A stretch of 64,000 nucleotides of DNA, taken from assembly GCA_946965045.2 (NCBI GenBank), contig OX337232.1, positions 2,976,001 to 3,040,000 on the forward strand, in the 5' to 3' direction. This document shows, piece by piece, positions 1,225-49,814 of this stretch. The translations under genes were made by a program, and so were the position numbers. Numbering within the stretch: the first letter of the stretch is position 1; each line of letters opens with the position of its first letter. A model generated the notes under the pieces. The model was not told the origin of the DNA. It did not search any database and saw only the letters and a list, made by a program, of their open reading frames with translations. This DNA is from Epithemia pelagica. Taxonomy: Eukaryota > Protista > Bacillariophyta.

Positions 1225-2022
1225 CTATTCCTGTTTTCGATATTTGCTGTCGCGCGAGAGAGCGGCCAGAACAGACAGATATTCGTTTTCGGCCAGGTCT
1301 ACCTTGACCATGGACCGATGTCCTTGTTGAATGGCTTTTGCATCTTCCTCAATAGCTTTGAGGTCACTGGAAAGCTCCTCGCTTAAACGACGCTTGCTAC
1401 GTGTCTGAATCAAATCCAGCGCCTTGTCTGGTTTGTCCTGTCGATACACATACATGGCGGCCAAGGAAACGGTTGCCGAATCGTAGTCCGGATCTTGTTC
1501 CAAGGCTTGTTTCCAGAGCGATTCAGCCTGTTCCTCCGCACGCTGTTTTTCACGTTGCAGAGCATATGATTTTCGTCTGGATGCTTGTTGAGATTTTTGT
1601 TTCGATGGCTTTCTGGTTGTTATATGGGATGCTTGCGTTGAGGCATTCTTGACATCTCGCTTGGACTCATGCTTGTGCTGTGGTTTGCTGTCAGGTTCTT
1701 CGGGTATGACTGGAAGGTTCCTTCGACTAGTGTGTTGGAGAGCCTGTAATCCTTGCTTGTGCAACTCAACAGCCGAATACGGGCACAACCAGCGATAGAT
1801 CTTGTGACCAATATAGGCCAAAAGCGCAGCCATGATGAGAAAAATAAAAATGGGAACAACAACGTCCCGAAAGAACCATTGTAATGTGACTTTCCATGCG
1901 CCCGATTCCACATATTCGCGAAGGGAATTGGAAATATCTTTCAAGGCCAGAATCATACCGGATCCTCGTGGTAAGGGTCGTTTGGAACACAAGGGTTGGG
2001 AATACGCAGCGTGTGGTCCACT

Positions 2023-2056
<34 letters not shown>

Positions 2057-2223
2057 GGTCCACCCAAGAAGGACGAAAAGACACCCTCTGGTGGTAGAGC
2101 CTCGTCATGGAAATTCATCATGGCGTTGGGTTTGACCTTTTCCATTCGATTCATCATTCCCCAAAACATGAATCCTTTTCGGACCACATTTTCGTTAGTG
2201 TCACAGCTGTTGTCGCCTCTCAT
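1225..2223 (-). CDS. Hypothetical protein with one TM helix and a TPR-like C-terminal helical region; start uncertain
   Basis: 332-aa ORF; hydrophobic VVVPIFIFLIMAALLAYIG; TPR-like AESLWKQALEQDPDYDSATVSLAAMY. Confidence 0.5.
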
Positions 2224-2974
2224 GCCTTGTCGTGGTCAGGAGTTTGAAACTATGAATGAAAATATGTCGTCTCTTTCGTGTGCTACCAAACAACCACGAG
2301 GACTGTTTGGATGTAGCGAATCAATGAAGCAGATCGCTGGTTCATTCCCAGATTTTTGTGGCGCCTACGGGCCATGTCGGAGCGCATGCAAGGGGAGAAG
2401 ACGGACGGTCTGTCATGCGATACTATATGGATTGGTGTACTTGTCGTGGCTTCGCGTGGAATCTGACCGGGCTGGCGCGAGCGCATCGCCAGGTTTGGGG
2501 GCAAGCCCCCCCCACGACCAGAAAGCTCTTGCTATTTTGGGTCTCGCATCCTTCCCCGGAACAAGACACTACACGACCATGACGAAAAAGAAAGGTGGTG
2601 GAGGAGTAATGTCCGATGAAGACATCTGTCGATGGACGTCCAGTCTACCGGATTCTGTCTTGTTGAAAGCCTTTGACAAACCCTTGGAAGAACAGCTCTC
2701 TAGTCTCTCAGTGGTGGAGAAGACGGGGTTGCGTGTTTGGTGGTTCAACCCCAATCAATGGCCGAGTTTGGACCGCCTCACCAAGCTCAAGTTTATTCGA
2801 TTCTTGTTGGAACACGCGTCGACGCAGCATCAAATTGCCGAAAAATTCCGAGCAACCGTCGTGGAAGTGGGCAAAACCTTGTGTGGGTACAATGCTGTCA
2901 AGGGCGCCTGTACCGCGGGGTGGGGTGGATTCTTTCATCATGGCAACAAAGCCACCACGGCCAATCACACGTGA
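2222..2974 (+). CDS. Hypothetical ORF, possibly frameshifted near its 3' end
   Basis: Distal part of a 380-aa ORF. The portion from MTKKKG (2579) looks protein-like; no recognised motif. Confidence 0.25.
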   Translation: MPCRGQEFETMNENMSSLSCATKQPRGLFGCSESMKQIAGSFPDFCGAYGPCRSACKGRRRTVCHAILYGLVYLSWLRVESDRAGASASPGLGASPPHDQKALAILGLASFPGTRHYTTMTKKKGGGGVMSDEDICRWTSSLPDSVLLKAFDKPLEEQLSSLSVVEKTGLRVWWFNPNQWPSLDRLTKLKFIRFLLEHASTQHQIAEKFRATVVEVGKTLCGYNAVKGACTAGWGGFFHHGNKATTANHT

Positions 2975-3549: not shown

Positions 3550-6500
3550 ATGAACATGACAGCCAAAAAGCGACGAATCTCCTCTGCTTTGGAACATTGG
3601 AGGCCATCGACCAAGCTCTCCAACCTTCTACTGACCCTATGTCTCTTGCAAAAGGCCGGTGATTCCTTTTGTCCTCCACCATGTCCACGACAGGCACCAA
3701 GTTTCCAGTTCAGTCCCCAGCCGACAGAACTACCACGTTCAAGACACGGTGGAAGACTCTGGAACGCCTTTGCGACTCGGGAACAAACAACAACGCCGCC
3801 AGTTGGCACAGAGACGCGCGAATCGTCGTCGTCATCGTCTTTTCCCGAGGACAATTCTGCTCGACCCGAGGAGACCTTGTACCGAATTGATGCAGCCAGT
3901 AAAGCGTTGGAGGGTCAACTGATACAGTTGCAGACTCTCTCGGATAAGTTTGAACAATTTTTGATGCGACGGCAAGCCGAAGACTTGGCTGGAAAGGTCT
4001 CGTATGCCAGCGACAAGGAGCTCCAAGAGGCCGAACATCAAACAGCCATGTTTGTCCAACGAATGGAGAACGTCCAAAAGGAATTAGGGAGTATCAAACG
4101 TCAGTTACAGGAAAAACAGGACGAAAAGGAGCGTTTGTTGGCAGAGATTGCCCATCAGAAAACGCACATGGCAAATGAGAGACAACAGAGCCATGTACAA
4201 GACCAAAGTTGGTTGGAACATGCGAGTATGAATGTTGACGTTCAATCTCAACCAATCCAACAACCAATCCAAAATCCGATACAGCACCCAATCCAACAAC
4301 AAGAACAGCCAAGAGATCAAACAATACAAGAACCAGTACAGCAACTAGTACAAAATCCGATGCAGCAACCAATCCAACAACCAGAACAGCCAAGACAGCA
4401 ACCAATACAGCAAGTAGTACCAATTCCGATACAGCAACCAATCCAACAACCAGAACAGCCAAGACAGCAGCCAATACAACAACTAGTACAAAATCCGATA
4501 CAGCAGGCAGTACAGCAACCAATCCAACAACCAGAACTTTCAAGACAGCAACCAAAACAACAACTGGTGCAACAACCAGTACAACAAAGACAAGAGACAT
4601 TACAACCATTCTCATCCCTGACCGACTTGATGACACCCATGCCATACCTGATGAAGATTGCCGATAAAATTTCCGAAAGTAGTAGCCTTGGCGTACAACA
4701 ACTACTACAAAGTCCGATGCAGCAGGCAGTACAGCAACCAAGCCAACAACCAGAGCATTCAAGACAGGAACCAAAACAACAACTGGTGCAACAACCAGTA
4801 CAGCAAAGACAACAGAAGTCACAACCATTCTCATCCCTGACCGACTTGATGACACCCAAGCCATACCTGATGAATATTGCCAATAAAATTTCCGAAAGTA
4901 GTAGCATGGCCGGGCAACTCTTTGGAATAGTCAAGGAAGCCGCTGCTAATACTCAGTGGCCATCGGAATTCAATGCAGGTGATCAAACGACCGTGGCAAC
5001 AGAACAAAACGAGCCAAAAGATTCGGTCCAACGTCCCACAAAGGAGGTGGGTCAAATATTGGGAATCGTCAAGGATGCCGTTGCTACGAAATGGCCACCA
5101 GAATTTAAACCAGGAGATCAGCTGGCAGCAGCGAAACCGAAAGAGCCAAAGGATCCGGTCCATCCTCAAATGAAAGAAGTGGGCAAAGCATTGGGAATCT
5201 TCAAGAATGCCGATGCTGCCAAATGGCCATCTAAATTCATTCCACGAGATCGACCAACAACGAAAGAACCAAATGATCCGGTCCATTCTCAAATGAAAGA
5301 AGTGGGCAAAGCATTGGGAATCTTCAAGGATGCCGTTGCTACCAAGTGGCCCCTAGAATTCATTTCACGCGATAGACCAACAACGGCGAAGCAGGACGAG
5401 GCAAATTATCAGGTCCATCCTCAAATGAAGGAAGAGGGTCATGTATTGGGAATCTTCAATGATGCCGTTGCTACCAAGTGGCCCTCGGAGTTCAATGTAG
5501 GAGATCGGCCGGCAACGGCGAAACAGGACGAGGTAAAGGACTTGGTCCCACGTCCAATAAATGAAGTGGGTAAAGTATTGGGAATGGTCAAGGATGCCGT
5601 TGCTACCAAGTGGCCACCAGAATTCAATGTAGGAGATCAAACGATTGTGGCAACAGAACAAAACGAGCCTAAAGATTCGGTCCAACATCCCATAAAAGAG
5701 GTGGGTCAAATATTGGGAATCGTCAAGGATGCCGTTGCTATTACCCAGTGGCCATCAGAATTCAATCCAGGGGATCGACCGGTAGTAATAGCGGAACAAG
5801 AGCCAACGGATTTGGTCCCACCTCCAATAAAGGAAGTGGGCAAAGTATTGGGAGTCGTCAAGGATGCCGTTGCTACCAAGTGGCCCTCAGAATTCATTCC
5901 ACGAGATCGACCGAGACAAACAGCGAGACAAGATGAGCCACAGGATGAGCCAAAGGACTCGGTCGAACCTCCAATAAAGGAAGTGGGAACAGTATTGGGA
6001 ATCGTCAAGGAAGCAGTTGCTACCAAATGGCCATCGGAATTCAACCTAGGGGATCGACCGGTAGAAACAGCGAAACAGGAGCCAACGGATTCGGTTCAAC
6101 CTCAAATAAAGGAGAATCCAGTTGCTTACAAATGGCCATCGGAATTCAGTCTTCGAGATCGCTCTAAAGTGAACCGGAAGAAGGAGTCCAAGGCTCCGGC
6201 CAAAGTCCAGTCACTACGAAAGTTGGCGTGGCAAAAAACCTTTGAGATCATGCCGAATGTGTGTTACCGGAAATCACTCGTGTCTTTGCCAAAGCATATT
6301 ATCTTTCGAAAGAAGCTTTTCTTACACAAGAATCTACCCTCACCCATTGTTGTCCCATTGTCTTCTGTATTGGAAGAACGAGTTCGCCAAGAACGAATGC
6401 CGCTCTCCACAACCAATGCTCAGACCCCAACATTCTTTTGGTACATTCCCATGAAAGCATCAGCTGCAGCTCGCCGTCACCTCACAGAGATCACATTGTC

Positions 6501-37111: not shown

Positions 37112-39001
37112 GCCGTGGTTGCATGAACGGTCCAGTGAAACGAACTTGGGTTAAGAAGCCATTCCGACATGAATGCATCCGACATGAATGCATTATGAAA
37201 ATTACACAATTGTCATTTATAGGGGAGAATCATCATCATCGTCCAATGCTGCTTGCAAATGGTGAGAGATTCATGCTTTCTGCTGTCGCAGCTTTCCAGT
37301 TGCCAGATCAATCAATGTAACTGTACATAATTGCCTCTTTAGTGTTGCGACTTTGTTTTGCCTTTGTAGTATTTTCGTATGTGATGCGAGTCGTTGCACT
37401 CTTCTCTTCGAATCTTCTTTTATTCTCGTTGAATCGTCATCGATACCCGATACCACGTTTTCCAGCATGAGACAGCCCTCGTTTCAATAGCAGTGAAGGT
37501 TCCGCGCAGTCGCCCAAGGAATCTTGATGCCCACACCCGATTTTCGCGACCATTGTCCGCAGCATTTCTTTAATCTTGCTCTTCGATTGTAGGCACACTC
37601 AGCGAGTGGCCCTTTTATCGACTGTGCGGTACTTCGAGCCTCTCCAGTGGCCTTTGTAGAGTGACAGTGACAACAACCGAAACCAAACGACTTGTCTTGT
37701 GCTCAACTTGTTATGATCATGTCCATTCTGTTGTGGCTTGGTCCACCACCGTGTGAACTGGGACTTGTTGGGATTTGTGCGCCCACACTTCCACTCCCCT
37801 CGAAACACAGAGGAGGGCGCTAACGAGAAAACAGCATACAATTAGCAATTATCTTCAGGTTCATGCTGATTAGTAGATGTTGAGATTAGAAGACTTTCTA
37901 TATACCAAAAAGTACAAAATCTCATAGGACTAAGAGTAGCGAGTAGGAGGAGTCTACCAAATCAAAGCTACCTTCCGTGAAGGATTGGAGGCGTCCGTAG
38001 TTCGTCCAGATAGAAACGGGAATACGAATACGCCGCTTGCCGCAACTTGCCGGTGGTTAGGCAACCTACCCAAAAAGGAACGGGTAGCCTGGGCATAGTG
38101 CCATTCAAGACCACACATGACTCTCCAGCTACTCCTTGTTGAGGTATCGGTGAGCTTCATTGAGAATCATTCACTGGTGAGCTTCATTGAGAACCACCAA
38201 AGTGTGGATGTGGATTACCAACGACGCGTCGTGGATGCATATTTCGCCGGAATCAAGGCGCCACCGGAGCCCCAAGGAGGATTGAGAATGTAGACTCGAG
38301 GCAACCGGTTCGCGCTTTGGAACAAACTGGCTAGGTACTGGTCATCTCTAATTCCACAAATCCACTACAATGCTCCTACTCCTACATTTCTACGTACAAG
38401 CCGCTTACAAGCCTAGATTTTACTGTGTGGTATTCGGTTTGTCAGTAAATCTAAAAAATACTCTTGCCTCATTTATGACTCTGCATGGACACGGTTCGTG
38501 TCTGACGGAGAAGGAAGTAACACCATTCAGAACGATTGATCTATCTGGAATCTGGATCCTTTGATGGTGATGGGAAAGACAAGATCTGTCGTTCTCGTTC
38601 AGAGCGGAACATAAGTTGTTGGGAAAGGTCAAAATTGCTACTCCCTCCGGCCTTTTTTTATCGCACGAAGTTGAGAAAAACGACATAACAATAGGAGCAT
38701 CCCCCGTACAACTTTTTGTTCCAAAAAGCCAGCCACACCACCAAACCCCGGCTGGCGCCCAGTTTCACCGTCCCGCGTGCCTATGTATTCTTATATCCTA
38801 GTGTCTAGAATCATTTAACAACATTCCCACTGCGACACGATTTTTACTTCCGATTCCGATCTGGTACTGGCTGTCTCGGGGTCTCACATTCCCATCTCGG
38901 AGGACCATCAACCCAATGCAAATGGGTAACAAGACCATGGATGTTCCTCATACGAAGACACAACATCCACTTGATAGGCTCTAATTCATTTGATTCAAGA
39001 C

Positions 39002-40729
39002 ATGAGTGATTATACAGATCTTCAAATTGAGCCGGATTACCATGCTCCTCCGTTCTACAGTGCGTTATACAAGGATGTTTTTCGTTTCGGATCATTTGTT
39101 CATGTGGCGAGGCCCGGACAAGATCGAGGGACAACAACAGTTGCCCGTCTTATTAAATGGGTCCTAGGTGGAGTCCAAGTCCAATTGTTCTATCCACTCT
39201 TTCCGAAACCAGAAGAATGTCTCCGTTGCCATCCCACGATTCCGAAGCACAATAATCTAGCACTCTCCAAGTGGAAGACGACAGAATTATATGAATCGAA
39301 CGAGTTCATTGAATTCTCGGAGACCAACCACTCAACCGGTGCTCCTGTCCAGATTAAAGACATCTTCTACCCTGCCTTTGTGTTTTCACTAACTGATATG
39401 GAGTCCAGTGCAAACCAATGGGCGAATGGTACCAAGAATGTTTACGTGGTTCGTTTCCGTCAGCACTCAGACCGTGGTTTGATTGCTATATCGGAGGACC
39501 GATTGCGCTTCCTTGTCTCTTACGACACCACTCTAACCCATCACATTTGTCCTCCGCGTTCAGTGCACCTCAATATTTGGACAGGGTTACACATTCTCCG
39601 TAAGGGGATTGCTAAAATCCTTAACCGTCGCTCAGGCTCGTCAGAAGAACGTGGCGTCTACTCCTTGTCGCTTGGATATGTTCCTACGGAAACTTTCGAC
39701 TACCTTAATCTTATGATTGGGAGTCAAATATCCAAACACTGTCTCCACAAGCCCCACCCAGCTTCCGAAACGTACCTGGACATGGATCAGAAATTCACCC
39801 GACGCAAGATCAAGATGACGTTCCAAACTGCCACCTTCCGGTTTGCCTCTGTTCAAGAATTGGACGTTCTTAGATCTTTGTTGGGATTCAGTGCTACATA
39901 TGGTTCTACAGAAATTCGCCCAACTCTCTATCATGGTAGCAAAGGCCTTTCGCTCAAGAGAGGACACACTCTTTCTCTTGTTTGCGGCCGTCCAAACGAC
40001 CAAGCACCACCTCCCTTCAAGAAGAGATGCCTTGACCAGAGAATAGACATCACATTCTCCCAGTATGCATGCCGAATCACTGTCTCTTACCAGCGCTATC
40101 ACTACGATAAGCTGCGTAGTGGGTCCCTCAAGGTCCCACCACCTACGGAACATTTGCGTCTTGCTCTTAGTGGTGGCCGACTTGCAGGACCGAACCCAAA
40201 TCTTTTGGCAACCAGTACTTCAGTTCCAGAAGAAACCACTGCCAACCAACCTCGAGTCTCGGAATCTTCTCGTTCCTCTGACGATGATGCAGTACGTCGT
40301 ATTTCAGACAGCTCCTCATTGAAGGACGAGTTGCCGACGCCTGCTGCTGCTTCCGAAAACCGTGTTGAGTCGGACAATGAAGACTCAACTGACATCTCTC
40401 TCGAAGCCGGTGAGATGTTCCATAAAGACGGCACCATTTGGGAGGTGATTGACATTTTCAAACCAGAACCCCGAGCTTTGGCTGTGATTCTCGAGATCGA
40501 AACGGGCTCTCTGTACACCACGGACACGCCCGAACCACCAGAAGGCTACCCCCTCGAAGACGACGCGGCCAAATTGATTGGGACAATTCCTGCCAATGCA
40601 GGTATCTATGTCGCCTGCCGAGTGAGCGCGGGCGATAGGTTCAATAGGCATTTGCCGGACGAACAACAATCTGTAGAACTCTTGCGCCTGACTGATGATA
40701 TTCAAGAGGCCATACGAAACTATCGATAA
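39002..40729 (+). CDS. Unknown 575-aa partner protein, possible N-terminal BAH-like domain
   Basis: Intact ORF. FRFGSFVHV..VARL..VQVQLFYP..ELYESNEF..IKDI..AFV resembles the BAH strand pattern; acidic/Ser linker near the C-terminus. Confidence 0.7.
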   Translation: MSDYTDLQIEPDYHAPPFYSALYKDVFRFGSFVHVARPGQDRGTTTVARLIKWVLGGVQVQLFYPLFPKPEECLRCHPTIPKHNNLALSKWKTTELYESNEFIEFSETNHSTGAPVQIKDIFYPAFVFSLTDMESSANQWANGTKNVYVVRFRQHSDRGLIAISEDRLRFLVSYDTTLTHHICPPRSVHLNIWTGLHILRKGIAKILNRRSGSSEERGVYSLSLGYVPTETFDYLNLMIGSQISKHCLHKPHPASETYLDMDQKFTRRKIKMTFQTATFRFASVQELDVLRSLLGFSATYGSTEIRPTLYHGSKGLSLKRGHTLSLVCGRPNDQAPPPFKKRCLDQRIDITFSQYACRITVSYQRYHYDKLRSGSLKVPPPTEHLRLALSGGRLAGPNPNLLATSTSVPEETTANQPRVSESSRSSDDDAVRRISDSSSLKDELPTPAAASENRVESDNEDSTDISLEAGEMFHKDGTIWEVIDIFKPEPRALAVILEIETGSLYTTDTPEPPEGYPLEDDAAKLIGTIPANAGIYVACRVSAGDRFNRHLPDEQQSVELLRLTDDIQEAIRNYR

Positions 40730-40803
40730 GCCATCCACCAATTAGTACTTATATATTTATATGTATACGTATAGTTATCCATTGAGTGCCTTCCTAATTA
40801 CAT

Positions 40804-43800
40804 TCAAATCGAGTCATCGTCTGACCATGTCTCAAAATCAGCAGGTAAGGGTACAGGTTCGTTTGGTGTGTTCTGTTCTTTCCCATTGTTCAATCCAACA
40901 GTAAAGTCAAATACAAGCTCGGCATCATGCTCGACGTCGTCTTGATTTCTTACCGTCACACCAATGGGTTGGCCAAACTCAATCGTACCCCCATTCTTCA
41001 ATACCCAGTCGTCTACCTTGTCACCTGTATCCGATTGTCCGTTTGCCTTGTTGTCTTCAAGAATCTCTGTTTCGGGGATACCTAACATAAAAACCAACCT
41101 CCTTTGCAACCAACGAGCCATGGATTTCATTCGACTCTGTTGTCCACGCCCTTGATTGGTCGCTCCACCTCGTTGTGTCCTGGAGAAGTAGTATGATTTA
41201 AATGCACTGTTGAATGCTTCCCAGCCTTGCTGAGTATGTCGTGACAGATTCTTCCAGTGAAACATATATTCGGAGAGGTGTCCACTGCCAATCATGTGGG
41301 CGTAATTAGTTACACCCTCGGCCCCACATAGATCAATCCACAGAGCGAAGAAATAGTCAGCTTGCCGCTGGAAATTCCAGATTTCTTCATTCGAGAGGTT
41401 ATGTTTCCTGTTTGCTATTTCGATCGCCTGTCGGTAGTGATCAATACATTTCTTCCATTTGGCTTTCTTGTCGTCATCAACAATCATGGGATCAATGAGC
41501 TGGTCCATCTCGGCAACAATCTTGCGGATCTTTACGTTGTCCATGCAAATCTTCGACACTGTATTTGTCTCTTTGTCGAACGGCAATATCCAGTGCTGTG
41601 CATGCATCATAGACCCAATGATGGAAGTATTGAGTATATTCTCAACCTTCTCTACAAACGCTTTGCACTTCTTCTCCATGGAATTCTTGTCTTGGTCACT
41701 GATCCACTCCTGTTCGTCGTTCTTTGTGGAGGTCAGTCCAAACTTGAGGCACATGGACAAAATTTTTATGCCCATCCGATTTTCCAAATGAAGAAGGCAT
41801 GGAACAGCATCCATCATCATTACTAAAGCGGTCGAGACACCTTCGTACTTGAACTGACCGACTCTCAAGGATGCTTGCACGAACGACCATTCCGACATGT
41901 GCTGTACTTTGAGTCGTTCATGGCGTTCTTCCAATGACCCCTCTAGGGACATCTTGCGTAGTTGTAAATCATTCGTAATATTCCTCGAGAATTCTCTTCG
42001 GTCTTGTATTGTAGCATTTTTGTAATCGAAATGGATTGAGTCAGTCGAAGTCTCTTGTAGATCATCTGGTGGGAAACGAGGGTCTTCATCTGTTCTAATC
42101 TTGGACTCGCTTCTGATGCTTTCGATTGTCTTGCAAATTTGGGGGCACTCCGCTTCAAACTTTTTCACTTCTTCCTTCATCAATGCAGTGTGTTCTCTCG
42201 TGCACATGTCGATGTGCCTACAGACCCAATTCGGGTCATTCTCTGTATGACACATGTGCAAACACAATTTACATTCAGAAGGAAGTTGTGACGCAAGATG
42301 AAGATCTGCTGACTTCACAGCACATTTGCTGCAAGGGAACTTACAATTCTTCGCCGCACCTCCACGACCCGACAATTTCCAATCACAGGACATGTCGCAG
42401 TTAGTGGAGATGCGAATGGGCTTGATACCATGAGCCGTAGGGAGTACGGTGATTGCGGCTTCGTCAATTTCCTGGATCATTCGTCCGAAGAGTCCACGAA
42501 CCACGGGTGTTGTTTCTCGTCCACAGACGCATACAACGGGAAAGACCGAGTTACGAGATTGACTCAGAGGGTTTGATGAGTCGTTGAATTTCAACCCTCC
42601 GAGTGTATGGGAGAGATGTTTCGTGAGGACGGCTCCATCAATACTTTGAGCCATGTGGATAGGACGGTCTACAGCGTCTCCAGTCAACAATCCACCTGAC
42701 TTTAGAATGATCTTCATGACATCGGCAGGGCGAAAGTAAAAACCTTCTGTCATAGAAGTCTCGTTCCGAATCATTCGGAAAGGACAAATGCGAGACCCAT
42801 ACAATTCAATGGAAGCAGCACAGTTCTGAAGCGAACTAGTACTAGGAATGATAGTGCGCATACGGGCCTTCCCATTGCTCTCAACGCGTCGAAGGATTTC
42901 AATGCCTTCATAGTTGAGTACCCCTCCGGCCTTGTCCATTTCTTGAAGAATTCGAAAAGGAGTAAAAATGGTACGACGAATGTGTTGGCCAACAATCTGC
43001 ACCGCAGTGTCTTGCAGTACACCATGGTGAATGTTCGAGTCGAGGATCATCTGGCAGAATGACTGAAAAAACCTCGACGCCCTTTCGCTGTCTTTCCCAT
43101 GGCCTCGAACCGAACGAATAAGGATCATCTTTATGTGCTTGACGATCTGATCGCCACGGTCCTTGTCCGTAGCCTTGGTTGGAATGACAAGCTCAGTGTT
43201 GCTGCGCTGAACTTCCAGAAGCTTCGTCTTAAACTTTGCGATCTTGCGAGTTTGTCGTTTGGTAACCTGTTGCTGTTGTTTCAGTTTCAACTTGAAAGAG
43301 AGGACTTCACGTTGGAGGTTGTCGATGAGAACGTCTTTTTCCTGACGGCTGGACCTGAGTCGGTCATTTTCTTTCTTCAAGTCATTGAGCAAAAAAGAAG
43401 TCGACATGGTGGAATCGTCAAACAGAGATCTTGTCAAAGTGCTATCTGTCCTCGACTCGGAGGATAATCCGGCTGTGCCACTGTGGAGTGAGACCTGGTG
43501 GGTATTCTTGGCGCATTCTTCTTCTTCTTCGCCGGAAGACTTGAAAATGGAGTCCATTTCGGATTCTTCGGAGGACTGGGACGATTCATCAAAGGATCCG
43601 TCACTCTCTGGCGCCGTCTTGGTCTTCTTCGTTGCTTGAACAGCGATATCAGAGGGGATCGAATGCCTTGGAGGGACCTTTCTTTTGCCTTTGGCGGAAC
43701 GTTTGACGACTGACTCAATCTTGACTGTATCGGTAGGAAAGACAACGTTGTCGTGGCTAGCAATACATGTGTACGGCCCATTTTCTGTTCTTCGGTTAAT

Positions 43801-44121
43801 GGGAACGTCCGGAAACAACGTCTCTTGATCATCTGCGGCTTGACATTGCCCACAGAAAAAAAAGCCATTCCATCGTTCCTCTCGATCCCTGCCAAAAACA
43901 GAACAAGGCTTGCAGTCATCTTTCGCGAATTCTTTACAGAGACGAGCGATCCTTTGTCGTTCAAGGGAACTGCAATGGGGAGGACGCTTTGCTTCACGTC
44001 GTTTTGAACGGGTTTGTAAGTTCGGAGATGGAGGAGCATTTTCAGCCCCTTTTTCCGCAATACGGGACGAATATCGAACCGACGACATGGTGCTATCGAC
44101 CAGGGTGGGCGTTGATGTCAC
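40804..44121 (-). CDS. RAG1/Transib (CMC-related) DDE transposase, 1105 aa
   Basis: Ordered motifs SIDG, CDMSCDWKLSG..FPCSKC, PCLLH, TNYAHMIGSGH, QGWEAFN parallel RAG1 SCDG, YDEKLVREVEG..YICTLC, DALH, TNYFHKTLAH, EGNESGN. N-terminal Cys cluster and coiled coil. Confidence 0.75.
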   Translation of the reverse strand: MTSTPTLVDSTMSSVRYSSRIAEKGAENAPPSPNLQTRSKRREAKRPPHCSSLERQRIARLCKEFAKDDCKPCSVFGRDREERWNGFFFCGQCQAADDQETLFPDVPINRRTENGPYTCIASHDNVVFPTDTVKIESVVKRSAKGKRKVPPRHSIPSDIAVQATKKTKTAPESDGSFDESSQSSEESEMDSIFKSSGEEEEECAKNTHQVSLHSGTAGLSSESRTDSTLTRSLFDDSTMSTSFLLNDLKKENDRLRSSRQEKDVLIDNLQREVLSFKLKLKQQQQVTKRQTRKIAKFKTKLLEVQRSNTELVIPTKATDKDRGDQIVKHIKMILIRSVRGHGKDSERASRFFQSFCQMILDSNIHHGVLQDTAVQIVGQHIRRTIFTPFRILQEMDKAGGVLNYEGIEILRRVESNGKARMRTIIPSTSSLQNCAASIELYGSRICPFRMIRNETSMTEGFYFRPADVMKIILKSGGLLTGDAVDRPIHMAQSIDGAVLTKHLSHTLGGLKFNDSSNPLSQSRNSVFPVVCVCGRETTPVVRGLFGRMIQEIDEAAITVLPTAHGIKPIRISTNCDMSCDWKLSGRGGAAKNCKFPCSKCAVKSADLHLASQLPSECKLCLHMCHTENDPNWVCRHIDMCTREHTALMKEEVKKFEAECPQICKTIESIRSESKIRTDEDPRFPPDDLQETSTDSIHFDYKNATIQDRREFSRNITNDLQLRKMSLEGSLEERHERLKVQHMSEWSFVQASLRVGQFKYEGVSTALVMMMDAVPCLLHLENRMGIKILSMCLKFGLTSTKNDEQEWISDQDKNSMEKKCKAFVEKVENILNTSIIGSMMHAQHWILPFDKETNTVSKICMDNVKIRKIVAEMDQLIDPMIVDDDKKAKWKKCIDHYRQAIEIANRKHNLSNEEIWNFQRQADYFFALWIDLCGAEGVTNYAHMIGSGHLSEYMFHWKNLSRHTQQGWEAFNSAFKSYYFSRTQRGGATNQGRGQQSRMKSMARWLQRRLVFMLGIPETEILEDNKANGQSDTGDKVDDWVLKNGGTIEFGQPIGVTVRNQDDVEHDAELVFDFTVGLNNGKEQNTPNEPVPLPADFETWSDDDSI

Positions 44122-45589
44122 ATAGTCCTTATGGTCGGTTTGAATCCTCCGTCCTGTGTAGGATGAGGCAAGGAATCGTCAAATATCGACGAAAAAAACA
44201 GAACACCATTGTCATGGTCTTCCGGATGCATCGGCTTCGGGTTCTGCGATTGAGGTATTGAGAGACGATTGAAAAGCGACTACGGCTTTATATTGCATTC
44301 ATTTCTATATATTTTTTATATTCATTGAGAGCCAGATGAGCTTTGAAATTTTGTGAATGTATTCTCATAATTTGAGACTTAGCGAAATTTGGAAAATTGG
44401 GTTCCGCTTCGGGGCTGGAGTTGGAGGGTAAATCCGAGCATGGTAAGTCTTATGTAAGCATGGGTTATGGTTGTGAGACATATTGAGATAAAATGTGGAT
44501 AGTTACATAAGAGTTGGGAGCCTTTGATTACGTTGGAAATCGGATGCCTTCTAACAGGGAGTCACGGAGGTCTGTCACGGCAGAGTTGTGGTAATACTTA
44601 ACAAAAGTCTGGATAAAAATTTGGTACAGTTTCACTTATAGAAAAATTGTCGGTTTCTGGAACGGGATTCATTGGGTGAGGATGTGCTCGCGTGCCAAAT
44701 GTACCCCGAATGCTCCTATTGACGTCTCGAGCGTCAGCCCGTTTGCGCTAAAAATTATATAGATCGAAAGCTTATTACTAGACTCAAATTTCCATGTATA
44801 ATTTATATGTTCCATCTCACAATCCTGGAGAGCTACATGGAACTAAAAGAGGCTAAAAACGCAATCCAAACTTTGGCGTACCGGTTCTGGCCCCCCAGGC
44901 GCACCCAAGGGATGGCACCCTCCGGCCAGGCCCGCGAGGGGGTAAAGTACATAGACTTGCCGGCTAATGACTGTGGACGTTCATTAGACATTCATCTATC
45001 CTTCCCCATCTGAATGGCACCTTGCCAGAGGTGTTTTGTCTTTCGTCGCCAAAATTTTTGGAGTTCATCGATCCATCATAAGTAGGCTATGAGAGTGCGC
45101 AGAGCAACTCGCACGCGGTGGACTTAATTAACTCCCCCGAAATTTCATCCAACGCACGCGCGCGTGGTCGATTCCTATGTGTTCTTCGACTGCTATTACA
45201 GAAGCGGTTAAAAGTGTCACGCGATAGAAGGATAGTTAAGTTGTGGCGCGTGTCATATTGAATGTTCATCTCTAAAATTCGACTCCGAATGAGCCGGCCA
45301 TCCTCCTGTAGAAATGTACCAGGTCCTACGACGGGTGTTTATGCGACTGATTTTTAGAAACCCCCAGGGGTGTTAGTTTGCTCAGGCAGCAATATGATTG
45401 GGTGAGACCATGTCGTTCCACACAAAACACTTAAAGGAAAACTCAGAACGACATGTCTTACCATTTCAAAAATCAGTCCCCCCATCGCCCCCCAAACACG
45501 GATTGGCAGCTTGAAAATCTCACCAAGTGAGATTCCAAGTGCCGATCCGGTCGGTCGCGGCCGCCAAGTCTCATCTCGGAAAGACGACA

Positions 45590-48500
45590 ATGAGACATTG
45601 GCCACTTTTCTGGCCATCTCATCTCGTCGATGACACACCTGTAGAAAACGTAATAGAAAAGATGGTTAGTAGGTCACACCAAACAACACAATCTTGGGCT
45701 GCTCAACAGGCTGCAGCAAGGGCGGCAATGGGCCCCCAATCCCAACGACGAGGGAACATTTACAGTCGCTTGCCAGTGCCACAGGGGCAGCGACGCTCGG
45801 GCAACCAAACCATGACAGGAGTAGTGGAGTTTGAGCCCCACATAGACTGTTATGTCTGCAGGGCTGTCCACAATGGACAAAACAAGCCACACAGAGCCCA
45901 CCACATGCTCTGTCCACTCAACAAAACAACAAAGGGCAAGGCAAAGACACAGGAGAAGGGCCAGATCCAACGACTGCTCGACAAAGCAGCAAAACAACAC
46001 AAGAAGAACAACAATAGGCCAATGAATGGCACAGAACAACTCGCCCCAGGCAATGTCAGTGAGGAGGCACTGGGTGCCTTTTTTTCTGTTCGCAACAACA
46101 CGACGAAACAAGTGAAGACAACGGGCAAGCTCACGTTGGAGTCGTTGGCGACGAAGAAAAAGCCAGTAGAAAGGAAGGTTGGGAAAACATGTGACAGTCA
46201 CATACCAACGAGTGCACGCATGTCGGTCGAAAATTTCAAAACAGAAATTCTACATAGGACAAACATGCTGGTTGAGGCGAGTTCGATTGCTCCCAAGACC
46301 ATGCGGGCTCTCGCGTCACTTATTCAGGACACGTGCCTTCGTTCAAAGCGGAGTACAACGGTTCTAGAAGCTTTTTTCGAAGGTATGGAGTTTTGTGTAC
46401 CGGCTTGCTCTGGGAACACGTGTCCTTTGTACGACTCGTTTGTGGGACAGAAACTCTATGTAGTAGATTGGGAACTCTTTTTTCCAAACCAAGTACTGTT
46501 TTGTCCTACATGTGGAGGTAATCTCCAGCGGACGCGGACTAATTTCTCCAAGAATAAGTCGCTTTTCCCCCAATTCGGAATAAATGGTCCCCCAAGCTAC
46601 GCGATCGTGATGCACTATAAGTGCTCGGCATGTGGTGCCAATCACCAAGGCAACGAATCGCAATTTCTCGCGAAACTTCCTCCCCACATGGCCATGGCGT
46701 ACCCAGTCGACCCGAAATACGCGGTCGGCAACTCGCACCTCAAGACTGACGCGACGAGACTCATGGAGCGGCTCATGGTGACTCATGGGAATGCAATTCT
46801 ATGTGCAGAATATCTCTATGAATCAATCAACCAGTGCTATATGGACAAAACTATGAGATTCTACTCGGAGCTCCTAGCGACAGACCAAGCAAGTGACCAA
46901 CCTTATCCAAAGAAGGATGGCGAATGGCTCGTGTCTTATCCCCCTCAAGCGGACACCCTTCGTCAGATATACGAGCAGGGTGCTTACTCAGACTATGTGT
47001 GGTGGGGAGTATCCGATGTTGACCGACACCAGCGAGAAATACAAATGGTGAAGTGTAGATTATCGTTTGCTCAGGACCACACCTGGGAGGTGGTCAAGAA
47101 CTACCTTTCCAGTTGCAAGGCAAAGGTCCTGTGGGATGTTTGCACCGAGACAGGCGAGATTGCCTGTCTTGTCTTGGTGCAATCAACAAAGCTGCAAGAG
47201 ATTGCCCATGCAGCAGAGCAATTGTCGCGTCGTATCGGGTTTTCTCCCGTAATTATGTATTCCGATACCTGGCCCCACAAGGATGACTTTTGGGAACTGA
47301 TACTCGGAGCACGGTTGATTGGTAGGTTGGGGTTATTTCATTTTTTGCAGCGAATTACAAAGACGCTTCGACAGCGTCATTGCGACCATGGGCAAGCACT
47401 TCGTGATTTGAAGGCTTTCATCTATGAAGAGCACGATGAAGACCTTCAGAAAGTCATCCATGCCCTCAAGACCGGATTGTTGGGAAAGGAATACACAGAA
47501 GAAGAGATTTGTGAGATGAGAGCAACGAAAGTCTTTGCTCAACGATACAACAAATACATACGAAAAAGGATTCGTTCGGCCGAAGTCATCAAAGGGAAAC
47601 TCGACGAATTCAAGGTGAGGTACAAAGTCACCGCCTCAGATGGACAACCAGCTGCTCGTGGCCGTCTTGACCCAAAGTCGGGCCAGACTCTCTTCACTCC
47701 AGAAACACACGATGCCCTGGTGAATTGCAAAGAGAAGGCTCAGTTTTTGGCCGACCCAAAACCAATCGAAGAGATGTATTGTGAGTTGCCACCGAATCGC
47801 AATGCAAAACATGGTCTCCCTGAGTTTCGTGCTTACCGTGGCGAGAGCAAGTTGGAGTCGTTTCACGACAACCTTGCTCATTTTGGGAACTGTGGGATGC
47901 GCGAGTCATTGGCAGATGCACTAAATTTGTGCGGAACTGCCAGGTACAATCGTACCATTCGACACAAGCTCGCTCTGTTGGATATGAATCCAACAGAGCG
48001 AGCGCAAATCCCAGCTGGATGGGAGTCGGTTGCGCCGTTTGACAACCACTTGCAACTCGAATTTATAAACAAAATGGCAAGGGCAACTGGTGTTAGTGGG
48101 CCATTCGCTAACGTAGAACAAATCCCAGAGGACAACGGAGAACGATTTTTGTCTACTTACCTCAAGCAACAAATGGAAAGAGACAAAACCGTGCCAAAGC
48201 ATCCGCTCAATGATCGCTGTCAGTGTTCGTTGTGTCAGGGCAATGCCAAGAGATTGCCCCATGACAGCTCCATTCCACCCTTTGCTTCGTCAGCTTCCTC
48301 CTCGTCTGTTGTTGTGTCTGCTTCATCACCAACCATGGCCGAGATTTATTTGAATCCGTATTTTCCCCAAAGAGGACGGAAACAACCCAAGAGCACCGTC
48401 CAAATCGAAGAAATATCCGAAGAAATAGACAACAGCATCAGTTGTTGCGGTGATGTAGCACCAGAACAGTCGGTTCCGGTTGCGAAGGACGCAAACAAAC

Positions 48501-48988
48501 GAAAAGCCGGCAACAACACAACAACAGAATCCAACAATCCATCCAAAAAGCAACGCATAGAGCAGCAAACGAATGAGACAGAAACTGGTGAGATGGAAGC
48601 TACACCAGGAAATGCAACAAGGGAAGTGGTAAGCTTACCTTCTTTGTCACGACAACAGGCCCAGTTGCATACGGCGACACAGCAGAGCAACACGCAACAA
48701 ACAAAACAAACAACAAATCACCATGCACCACCAGCACAGCAATGCAATCGTCCACCATTCTTTGGACTCCCTGTTGCCATGGCCAAGTACTCCAACCTGT
48801 TGCCGCCACCACCACTCCATCCAGCTTTGTACCCGTGCCATCCGTTCGGCTATCCTCATCGTCCATCGCCACGAACTCAAATCCAGTTTTGTTGCGTGAA
48901 GCACAAAGAATACTACGACAGTGGCAAGAGGGGACGACCACCACACAGCAAAGACTGTCCAAAGCGGAATTTCCGAGGCTTCGATTGA
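45590..48988 (+). CDS. Putative DDE transposase of a MULE/DUF6729-like type, with zinc-finger motifs at both ends
   Basis: CYVC..H..HH.LC; CPTC..YKCSAC; QDHTW (D), YSDTWP (D), LGLFHFLQRI, RGESKLESFH (E); C-terminal CC.KH..PPH.KDC. Confidence 0.55.
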   Translation: MRHWPLFWPSHLVDDTPVENVIEKMVSRSHQTTQSWAAQQAAARAAMGPQSQRRGNIYSRLPVPQGQRRSGNQTMTGVVEFEPHIDCYVCRAVHNGQNKPHRAHHMLCPLNKTTKGKAKTQEKGQIQRLLDKAAKQHKKNNNRPMNGTEQLAPGNVSEEALGAFFSVRNNTTKQVKTTGKLTLESLATKKKPVERKVGKTCDSHIPTSARMSVENFKTEILHRTNMLVEASSIAPKTMRALASLIQDTCLRSKRSTTVLEAFFEGMEFCVPACSGNTCPLYDSFVGQKLYVVDWELFFPNQVLFCPTCGGNLQRTRTNFSKNKSLFPQFGINGPPSYAIVMHYKCSACGANHQGNESQFLAKLPPHMAMAYPVDPKYAVGNSHLKTDATRLMERLMVTHGNAILCAEYLYESINQCYMDKTMRFYSELLATDQASDQPYPKKDGEWLVSYPPQADTLRQIYEQGAYSDYVWWGVSDVDRHQREIQMVKCRLSFAQDHTWEVVKNYLSSCKAKVLWDVCTETGEIACLVLVQSTKLQEIAHAAEQLSRRIGFSPVIMYSDTWPHKDDFWELILGARLIGRLGLFHFLQRITKTLRQRHCDHGQALRDLKAFIYEEHDEDLQKVIHALKTGLLGKEYTEEEICEMRATKVFAQRYNKYIRKRIRSAEVIKGKLDEFKVRYKVTASDGQPAARGRLDPKSGQTLFTPETHDALVNCKEKAQFLADPKPIEEMYCELPPNRNAKHGLPEFRAYRGESKLESFHDNLAHFGNCGMRESLADALNLCGTARYNRTIRHKLALLDMNPTERAQIPAGWESVAPFDNHLQLEFINKMARATGVSGPFANVEQIPEDNGERFLSTYLKQQMERDKTVPKHPLNDRCQCSLCQGNAKRLPHDSSIPPFASSASSSSVVVSASSPTMAEIYLNPYFPQRGRKQPKSTVQIEEISEEIDNSISCCGDVAPEQSVPVAKDANKRKAGNNTTTESNNPSKKQRIEQQTNETETGEMEATPGNATREVVSLPSLSRQQAQLHTATQQSNTQQTKQTTNHHAPPAQQCNRPPFFGLPVAMAKYSNLLPPPPLHPALYPCHPFGYPHRPSPRTQIQFCCVKHKEYYDSGKRGRPPHSKDCPKRNFRGFD

Positions 48989-49814
48989 TCCGGGCTGTCC
49001 ATTTGTCGAGACGACAGGAAGGAAGATCCAATGGCACACCGAAAGACATGGCGATGCCATCCAGCCATCACAACCAATCCACCCACCCAAAAACCACCTT
49101 CATTACCACCACTGCATGCCCCATCATCGCTCCAATTACAAGAACTTAAAACATGAATCGACCAACAACCTGAATACCTGAATGACCAAGAACACAACAA
49201 GCACGACAAGATAGTTAGTAACAAAAATACGAAAAACAGAATTTATGAGACATCCATATCTTCTCTAGCCACCGTAGCACATGGAAAGGGCACCCGGAAA
49301 GTGACAAGGCTCTTGCGGAATTCGGGTGTCAAGTCAAACCTGTTGAACGACAGACAATTAAAGGTGAGAGGCCAATAAAGACAGAATGTTGCTACCGGTC
49401 TTGTAAGGGGAAAAATGCTTCCACGTACTTACCTGCCTGATCCCCCTCTGAGGACATGAAAGGTGATGTTACGACATGTCACAACAATCCTCGAAAATGC
49501 GAATGAAACGATCGAACCAGAACGATGGAATCCAGCTGCCAAAACTCTCCCCTTTTTCCTCCCCTTCTTCTTCCTCTCCTCCCCCTCCCCTTCTCTCTTC
49601 TGCCTTGGGCCCCCCCATTTTCCCCCCGGATCGTGCGATAAAAAAAGGCCGGAGGGATCAGGCACCCTTTATTCAGTCGTGACCGGGACTCCGATACTGT
49701 CTAATGACGTATGACGTCATTCACTTACGGATGATGGCAAGGTACGTGGCTCCATATTATTGTGTGCAAATCGCATTGGACAAATGGAAACTGCAATTGG
49801 TTCGTCTCTTTCGT

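Follow-up and report, generated by a model that had tools for sequence, protein, structure and literature searches.

V(D)J recombination is traced to a Transib-like transposase that took up RAG2, a protein with a PHD finger that reads H3K4me3; to our knowledge, no second acquisition of this kind has been described so far. Transib elements carry one gene, encoding a transposase of ~500–700 amino acids (aa) that is recognized by Pfam RAG1 models; their terminal inverted repeats (TIRs) are of the CACAATG type and their canonical target-site duplication (TSD) is 5 bp. In RAG1, the second catalytic Asp lies 19 residues from the CxxC motif, and the last His lies 20 residues from the catalytic Glu. 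Plant CACTA elements encode two proteins, TnpD and TnpA, from one transcription unit, with no BAH domain. Here we describe a two-gene element in a 64,000-nucleotide stretch of the genome of the diatom Epithemia pelagica (GenBank assembly GCA_946965045.2, contig OX337232.1, positions 2,976,001–3,040,000; hereafter the window, by whose numbering positions are given), where the gene for a transposase with a predicted RAG1-like core converges on the gene for a partner protein with a predicted BAH fold.

CACTA, Mirage, Chapaev and Transib elements have been grouped as the CMCT clade, mostly with CA..TG termini and 2–5-bp TSDs; C(2)C and H..H motifs are common to this clade, and ESTA in HHpred also finds RAG1 (Kojima 2025, PMC12730594). 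DUF1280, which corresponds to Chapaev, clusters with RAG1, and Mirage clusters with EnSpm (PMC3985635). In the stramenopile Aureococcus, the RAG-like (RAGL) element AanRAGL is bounded by bipartite TIRs of the CAC type, makes a 5-bp TSD and carries its Kelch RAG2L gene upstream, in the same orientation (PMC9435367; PMC10629977). Against this background, our reading of the window element, to which we give a probability of about 0.8, is that it is an intact two-gene cut-and-paste transposon from a large, uncatalogued family, which pairs an enzyme of RAG1/Transib architecture with an obligate BAH partner and represents a deep CMCT lineage.

An earlier note on this DNA, made from its letters alone, had reported two intact open reading frames (ORFs) lying tail to tail 74 bp apart, and both are present and convergent. 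Its span of 39002–44121 holds for the ORF pair; the mobile unit is larger, at 38689–44721 with the TIRs included. The features of the transposase are as follows.

40804..44088, minus strand: transposase gene, 1,094 aa from an ATG at 44088, intact
41062..42984, minus strand: catalytic core with predicted RAG1 fold, residues ~380–1020, holding D495, D576, E968 and the Cys/His ligands
43201..43392, minus strand: long coiled-coil helix, residues 244–307 (DSSP helix H244-307), for which profile searches return only coiled-coil noise
43717..43959, minus strand: N-terminal Cys-rich module, residues ~55–135, predicted local distance difference test (pLDDT) 78–94

The mechanical ORF is longer (40804–44121, minus strand, 1,105 aa) and opens with a GTG at 44121. 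The true start is likely the ATG at 44088, which gives the 1,094-aa length of the database gene model P0001, a match to ORF residues 12–1105. Its relatives fall into 1,516 representative clusters (E≤1e-3; 1.84 billion representatives searched), and the ORF is therefore not a product of chance.

The transposase core, as modeled by AlphaFold from 68 sequences (mean pLDDT 80.5, with residues ~320–1040 mostly above 90), has the architecture of RAG1 and Transib: an RNase-H domain, with D495 on its first strand and D576 just past its fourth, is combined with a Cys2 and His2 zinc module and a helix that bears E968. In a Foldseek search of the PDB, the top 49 matches were all RAG1, BbRAGL or HzTransib (E down to 2.4e-11, probability 1.00), and the next fold was the P element transposase at E 0.05. 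VIA-align gave RAG1 at Z 16.7, with model residues 380–1022 on RAG1 459–1008 and thus over the whole catalytic core (DDBD, PreR, RNase H, ZnC2, ZnH2 and CTD), HzTransib at Z 16.4 (383–1016 on 21–478) and BbRAGL at Z 15.4, compared with 8.6 for the P element and 5.3 for Hermes. The best structural matches in both searches are therefore those expected from the RAG1 assignment of the earlier note and do not fall in an unrelated DDE family.

Residue conservation across 68 aligned relatives fits this architecture. D495 (codon 42637–42639, in strand 489–498) is found in 68/68 relatives, D576 (codon 42394–42396, directly after strand 570–575) in 67/68 and E968 (codon 41218–41220, in helix 965–981) in 67/68; these are the D/D/E candidates that had been proposed, and all transposase motifs quoted with them occur in the translation. 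The pairs C597/C600 (FPCSKC) and H942/H948 (NYAHMIGSGH) are present in all 68, and C617, C620, C634, H636, C775 and H778 make up a further conserved ligand set. By motifs and AlphaFold model alike, the DDE triad and the Cys2...His2 ligands follow the RAG1 order and sit on the expected secondary-structure elements. In the N-terminal Cys-rich module, C73, C90, C93 and C119 are nearly invariant, with a His nearby. A zinc finger named 'Chapa' has been described for Chapaev (bioRxiv 10.64898/2026.01.24.700457), and a resemblance of the module to it or to the RAG1 NZD would be informative about a position of the enzyme near Chapaev or RAG1.

The second gene encodes a protein with a quite different set of predicted domains.

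39002..40729, plus strand: partner gene, 575 aa from an ATG at 39002, intact (mechanical ORF 38990–40729)
39041..39511, plus strand: domain with predicted BAH fold, partner residues ~14–170 (Foldseek, VIA-align, AlphaFold Database)
39563..40186, plus strand: middle alpha/beta domain, residues ~188–395, confident in the model and conserved family-wide
40193..40393, plus strand: acidic, Ser-rich disordered linker, residues 398–464, pLDDT <50, variable in length and sequence
40394..40726, plus strand: C-terminal SH3-like beta-barrel in the AlphaFold model, residues ~465–575
40730..40803, no strand: intergenic gap, 74 bp between the convergent stops, holding an AT-rich palindrome

The partner model, built from 50 sequences, has a pLDDT of 82.5, and in it residues 14–170 adopt a BAH fold. 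The top Foldseek matches in the PDB are all BAH domains (BAHCC1, SHL, EBS, ORC1, Sir3 and DNMT1; E 8e-5 to 4e-3, probability 1.00). Among 48,161 chains compared by VIA-align, the top 19 are likewise all BAH, with Z up to 10.6 over a model range that starts at residue 14 and ends between 164 and 201, and a search of the AlphaFold Database agrees. Z against BAH structures runs from 8 to 10.6, with a template-modeling score of 0.4–0.57 by target. When the partner profile was searched against PDB sequences, only two matches fell below E 10, and both were BAH domains (Rsc1 and ORC1). Its language-model neighbors are BAH, Agenet, PWWP, Tudor and SAWADEE clusters. The middle domain has no structural match in the PDB (Foldseek, VIA-align) or in the AlphaFold Database searches; the C-terminal barrel shows weak VIA-align matches, at Z ~5, to KOW, Tudor and SAWADEE barrels. 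A Kelch propeller is absent among the structural matches of the partner, and the view that the second subunit is not RAG2-like holds up, with a predicted BAH fold in place of Kelch. From these model-based comparisons, the partner is likely a chromatin-reading protein unrelated to RAG2.

The pairing of the two genes is constant wherever it could be scored. Scanning JGI metagenomes, we found 415 stretches that encode transposase relatives, of which 80 were fetched; a hidden Markov model (HMM) of the partner was iterated to convergence, and a locus was counted as testable when at least 1.2 kb was available downstream of the transposase. A partner homolog was present in 55/55 testable loci, always on the opposite strand in convergent orientation and 12–257 bp away, which bears out the consistent linkage that the earlier note had supposed. 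Full-length homologs in these loci score E 1e-69 to 1e-139 with the partner HMM, linkage persists down to ~24% transposase identity, and homologs of the partner were found only beside transposase relatives. The existence of full-length homologs also shows that the partner ORF did not arise by chance. In the diatom assembly, all fetched loci (L001, L002, L004, L005, L006 and L087–L090) are convergent, with gaps of 32–74 bp. The palindrome in the gap of the window copy, ATATGTATACGTATAGTTAT at 40759–40778, could be a shared bidirectional 3'-end signal.

Transposase and partner have also diverged together. Over 40 loci, their distances correlate with a Mantel r of 0.94, a value reached by 0 of 2,000 permutations, and r is 0.74 among pairs with a transposase distance above 0.5. 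Between the window copy and its closest paralog, L005 (located by way of a partner protein with 89% identity to that of the window), the ratio of nonsynonymous to synonymous substitution rates (dN/dS) is 0.067 for the transposase (dS 0.58) and 0.137 for the partner (dS 0.39); both genes are under purifying selection. Linkage, co-divergence and dN/dS together therefore make the partner an ancient, selected and co-inherited component and not recent cargo, and the family itself is ancient, occurring in diatoms and many aquatic metagenomes.

This evidence bears on a different role for the partner, that of a passenger aiding the element otherwise, as an anti-silencing or chromatin-remodeling factor or as a regulator of expression. 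Silencing and chromatin regulation are common functions of BAH proteins (the structural targets above include Sir3, ORC1, DNMT1, BAHCC1, EBS and SHL), and TET/JBP accessory genes in fungal CMCT, KDZ and PHIS elements act on epigenetic marks (PMC12730594). We nevertheless consider such a passenger rather improbable, given universal linkage with fixed orientation and spacing in 55/55 loci and tight co-divergence: such linkage is more typical of an obligate cofactor, whereas captured cargo is usually lineage-restricted. Linkage and co-divergence fit a catalytic cofactor and an essential non-catalytic helper alike. One copy, L088, does have a Kelch-repeat gene nearby (1443–2558, minus strand, ~2 kb outside the left TIR); it is absent at other copies and is probably a coincidental host gene, not a RAG2-like partner.

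The boundaries of the element are defined by an inverted-repeat scan and by comparison with L005.

38689..38710, plus strand: left TIR, where similarity to L005 begins exactly
44700..44721, minus strand: right TIR, where similarity to L005 stops (at 44721)

These two sequences form an imperfect inverted-repeat pair of 22 nt around a 6,033-bp unit (38689–44721) with only two genes inside. By blastn, the window and L005 are 88.5% identical over 6,039 bp, confined exactly between the TIRs. Both copies end in CAATAGGAGCAT, followed by five variable bases and then GTACA. The same type of terminus occurs in more diverged copies of the assembly (L001, L004, L006 and L088) and in metagenomic copies, with examples among diverged copies such as CAATAGCAGCAT, CAATACGAGCAC, CAATACCAGCCATAG, CACTACCAGCCATAG and CATTACGG...; the family pattern in 16 copies is 5'-CA[A/C/T]TA[C/G]...TG-3'. 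All 16 copies that have both ends carry 5'-CA...TG-3' termini, some subfamilies (L046 and L051) begin CACTAC, as En/Spm does, and element length across copies is 4.7–6.6 kb. Subterminal repeats of the type bound by CACTA TnpA did not stand out in the element. Two NCBI relatives belong to another diatom, Epithemia clementina. Two copies of a young subfamily are truncated at a recurrent point: the right ends of L089 (~11020) and L090 (~11006) stop at the same internal position, ...GGGGTGCT|, so that the final CCTATTG (7 nt) of the TIR is missing, and L089 also lacks the first 89 bp. This may reflect aberrant end processing.

Several results weigh against our reading of the element. Sequence-level homology to any named transposase family was not found: no Pfam family matches at E≤10 for the transposase alone or in sets of 34 and 58 family members, and Pfam models of RAG1 domains find no match at that threshold in the 58 members. 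The evidence for the fold match is therefore an AlphaFold model. Likewise, the Pfam BAH model (PF01426) matches 0/50 partner homologs at E≤1, which makes the BAH assignment a structural one only. C597-x2-C600 is invariant; the histidine pair with which it goes, H942-x5-H948, is one residue wider than the H(3-4)H stated for the CMCT clade. No TSD of 2–10 bp is present in six complete genome copies, which is odd for a CMCT DDE transposon; no excision joints were seen in three public genomic runs that hold the locus; and the nearest copy of the window element is the L005 copy, at only 88.5% identity.

Other sequence searches gave the same picture. PF06918 (DUF1280), PF02992 (Transposase_21) and PF06869 (DUF1258) have no match at E≤10. 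Among PDB sequences, neither the protein nor its family profiles (phmmer, hmmsearch) found anything beyond coiled-coil noise, and the profiles, full or core, reached no RAG1 or Transib chain at E≤10; a profile search of 5.8 billion proteins recovered family members only, none bearing a Pfam label. We found no paper on this family, on diatom Transib/CMC (CACTA/Mirage/Chapaev) elements or on a BAH-encoding DNA transposon, in a literature check that did not cover Repbase; together with the missing Pfam and PDB sequence matches, this leaves standing the earlier suggestion of a possibly uncatalogued lineage. The same check showed no evident link between the family and the Lanisha lineage from moss, which we rejected as a relative.

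Predicted structures bear on placement within the clade. In a shape search, RAG1/Transib, DUF1280 and plant Transposase_21 (EnSpm/CACTA) clusters score alike. Neighbors in the AlphaFold Database include many uncharacterized eukaryotic proteins; there, a DUF1280/PHD protein of Caenorhabditis elegans ranks third and RAG1 ranks 25th. Language-model features put DUF1280 clusters first (0.85) and RAG1/Transib clusters (RAG1_RNase_H) next (0.76–0.79); these similarities are all below the 0.9 level and serve as leads only. The nearest annotated neighbors are Chapaev (DUF1280) and Transib/RAG1, and the enzyme appears to lie on or near the Chapaev/Transib/RAG1 side of CMCT, too diverged to be assigned to any named lineage by the searches used here. 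Because the fold and the C(2)C...H..H motifs are common to the whole clade, descent from the RAG/Transib branch specifically is not shown, and on these models the family is best placed as a new deep CMCT lineage, not as a proven RAG/Transib member.

A true descendant of RAGL/ProtoRAG or Transib, in which the BAH partner replaced a RAG2-like gene or had no such predecessor, would make the family a divergent branch of those elements and not a separate CMCT lineage; we regard this origin as unlikely, although it has points in its favor. RAG1, BbRAGL and HzTransib are the only strong matches among solved structures, the two genes converge as those of ProtoRAG do, another stramenopile, Aureococcus, is already known to harbor a RAGL transposon (PMC9435367), and the language-model features reach RAG1_RNase_H clusters at the values given above. 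Against such descent, the RAG1 Pfam models and the PDB profile searches miss every RAG1 or Transib connection, the TIRs read CAATAG or CAMTAC with neither a CAC heptamer nor a second element, no 5-bp TSD accompanies them and the partner is not a Kelch protein. Predicted EnSpm and DUF1280/Chapaev models also match about equally well, and no transposase of the CACTA, Mirage or Chapaev groups has a structure in the PDB, so RAG1 may just be the nearest solved fold. The label 'RAG1-related' given by the earlier note thus stands for fold and motifs, as a place in the wider CMCT fold group, with descent from the RAG/Transib branch not demonstrated, and 'ProtoRAG-like' stands as an architectural analogy but not as membership, given TIRs that are not RSS-like (that is, not like recombination signal sequences), the H-x5-H spacing and the lack of a 5-bp TSD.

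Neither the 5-bp TSD of Transib and RAG nor the 2–4-bp TSD of CMC elements was found in 16 copies, the nearest approach to the former being L005, where 4/5 bases match. A single flanking base is identical on the left and right in 6/6 complete genome copies (a/a, c/c, t/t, c/c, a/a and a/a), an outcome with a chance probability of ~2e-4, at the following positions.

38688 and 44722: bases flanking the window copy
9687 and 15706: bases flanking L005
9633 and 15746: bases flanking L001
7447 and 13720: bases flanking L004
9646 and 15740: bases flanking L006
4457 and 11014: bases flanking L088

Only 3/11 metagenomic contigs show a single-base match, and their flanks are unreliable and may be chimeric. 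The identical base could be a 1-bp target duplication or chance; we know of no precedent for a 1-bp duplication in the CMCT clade. One metagenomic copy, L017, has the 7-mer ATCCTAC on both sides (98–105 and 5135–5141), 1–2 nt off the TIR ends. Its subfamily could make a longer TSD, or the assembly could be at fault; we rejected the 7-mer as evidence of a TSD, given its offset from the TIR ends and its occurrence in only one, short metagenomic contig.

Missing TSDs and excision joints, together with a nearest copy at 88.5% identity and dS of 0.4–0.6, are what one might see if the window copy were a dead relic that no longer moves or if the two genes were a domesticated host pair, for which strong purifying selection could reflect host function. 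Copy number and integrity speak to the contrary and make this very improbable in our judgment. More than 30 distinct copies with unrelated flanks and conserved TIRs lie in one diatom assembly, copies of a young subfamily are 97–99% identical, the 415 metagenomic stretches counted above encode relatives, and the window copy keeps two intact ORFs, its catalytic residues and the outermost 12 nt of each TIR. Judged by sequence, the window copy is an intact, autonomous cut-and-paste transposon.

How such an element might move can be outlined from these parts. The transposase would bind the CA...TG termini and excise the element by the nick–hairpin chemistry of RAG1 and Transib. The partner would be a second subunit: by tying the enzyme to nucleosomes, it would determine the place or time of cutting or insertion and so parallel RAG2 in function. 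A more ambitious version of this proposal, which we hold tentatively and at somewhat less than even odds, is that a RAG1-type nuclease and a histone-reading subunit were joined here independently of RAG1–RAG2. This widespread protist family would then work as a two-subunit recombinase in which the BAH partner, like the PHD finger of RAG2, directs or licenses both cleavage and integration on chromatin, maybe with an unusual integration geometry whose stagger does not exceed 1 bp.

It seems that RAG-type enzymes acquired a helper subunit on more than one occasion. If the joint proposal is true, the family would provide a second natural experiment in the chromatin coupling of RAG-like enzymes and a new deep branch with which to root the origin of RAG/Transib in early eukaryotes. 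The family opens to testing why RAG-type nucleases recruit a second subunit, whether chromatin reading is the selected function and how deep the CMCT/RAG fold reaches in eukaryotes. We also envision these intact, compact elements, 5–6.5 kb long, as candidate transposon tools in diatoms.

The surroundings of the element contain other mobile DNA. To its right lies an intact ORF of 1,153 aa (45527–48988, plus strand), which is DUF6729/Mutator-like (Atlas features 0.96), and a perfect 27-nt inverted repeat (38642–38668 and 49631–49657) encloses both that ORF and the RAG1-fold element. Although this repeat brackets all three ORFs, we rejected the third as part of the unit because DNA similarity to L005 ends at 44721, because the gene at the equivalent position in L001 is unrelated and because the ORF encodes a DUF6729/Mutator-like protein. 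The 6-kb element may have landed within another transposon, 20 bp in from its left end; a second copy of the 27-nt repeat was not found in the fetched loci. Mobile-element neighbors of other copies are often RVT_2 (Copia-type) retrotransposons, DDE_Tnp_4 or MULE genes (L004 3066–6926; L005 352–5901 and 19907–21085; L001 20829–21653; L090 742–2412), which suggests that copies accumulate in repeat-rich regions.

Set beside the systems with which we began, the element shares with each a different part of its design. With plant CACTA elements it has two proteins in common, but here the second is encoded by its own convergent gene, with a predicted BAH fold unlike TnpA. The CMC superfamilies more broadly (Chapaev, EnSpm/CACTA and Mirage) have the same CA...TG termini, and predicted EnSpm and DUF1280 models share the fold, whereas the family differs from them in its H-x5-H spacing, in having no 2–4-bp TSD and in having no Pfam match. 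Transib, as represented by HzTransib, has the same core fold, the same C(2)C...H..H...E order and termini that also start with CA; in contrast, the element described here has two genes, a 1,094-aa enzyme with a zinc module and a coiled coil, and no Pfam match.

RAGL and ProtoRAG elements share more. In common are the predicted RAG1-fold core over the whole catalytic region, the DDE triad and the Cys2/His2 order, and ProtoRAG likewise has two convergent genes between its TIRs. Local spacing is also close to that of RAG1, with 21 residues here from the second Asp to CxxC and 20 from the last His to the Glu. Different here are the lack of detectable sequence homology to RAG1 or RAG1L, the absence of the 5-bp TSD of RAGL and Transib elements from all six complete copies, and the termini: RSS-like TIRs have a CAC heptamer, a second element and asymmetric spacers, whereas these begin CAATAG or CAMTAC, and no heptamer/nonamer pattern with differing spacers was seen in them, spacer asymmetry not being analyzed further. 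With AanRAGL, only the fold, the motif order and the two-gene layout are in common.

The partner differs from known proteins in its own way. Residues 14–170 share the BAH fold, as modeled, of histone readers such as ORC1, BAHCC1, EBS/SHL, Sir3 and DNMT1; unlike them, it is encoded by a transposon, its 50 homologs go without a Pfam BAH match and a 200-aa unmatched domain is fused to the reader fold. Compared with RAG2, it is predicted to combine a BAH fold with that unmatched domain and is not a six-bladed Kelch propeller with a PHD finger. Yet the layout of the two proteins runs in parallel, with the core, acidic hinge and PHD finger of RAG2 mirrored here by a structured core, an acidic linker and a small C-terminal domain that, in the model, resembles a reader.

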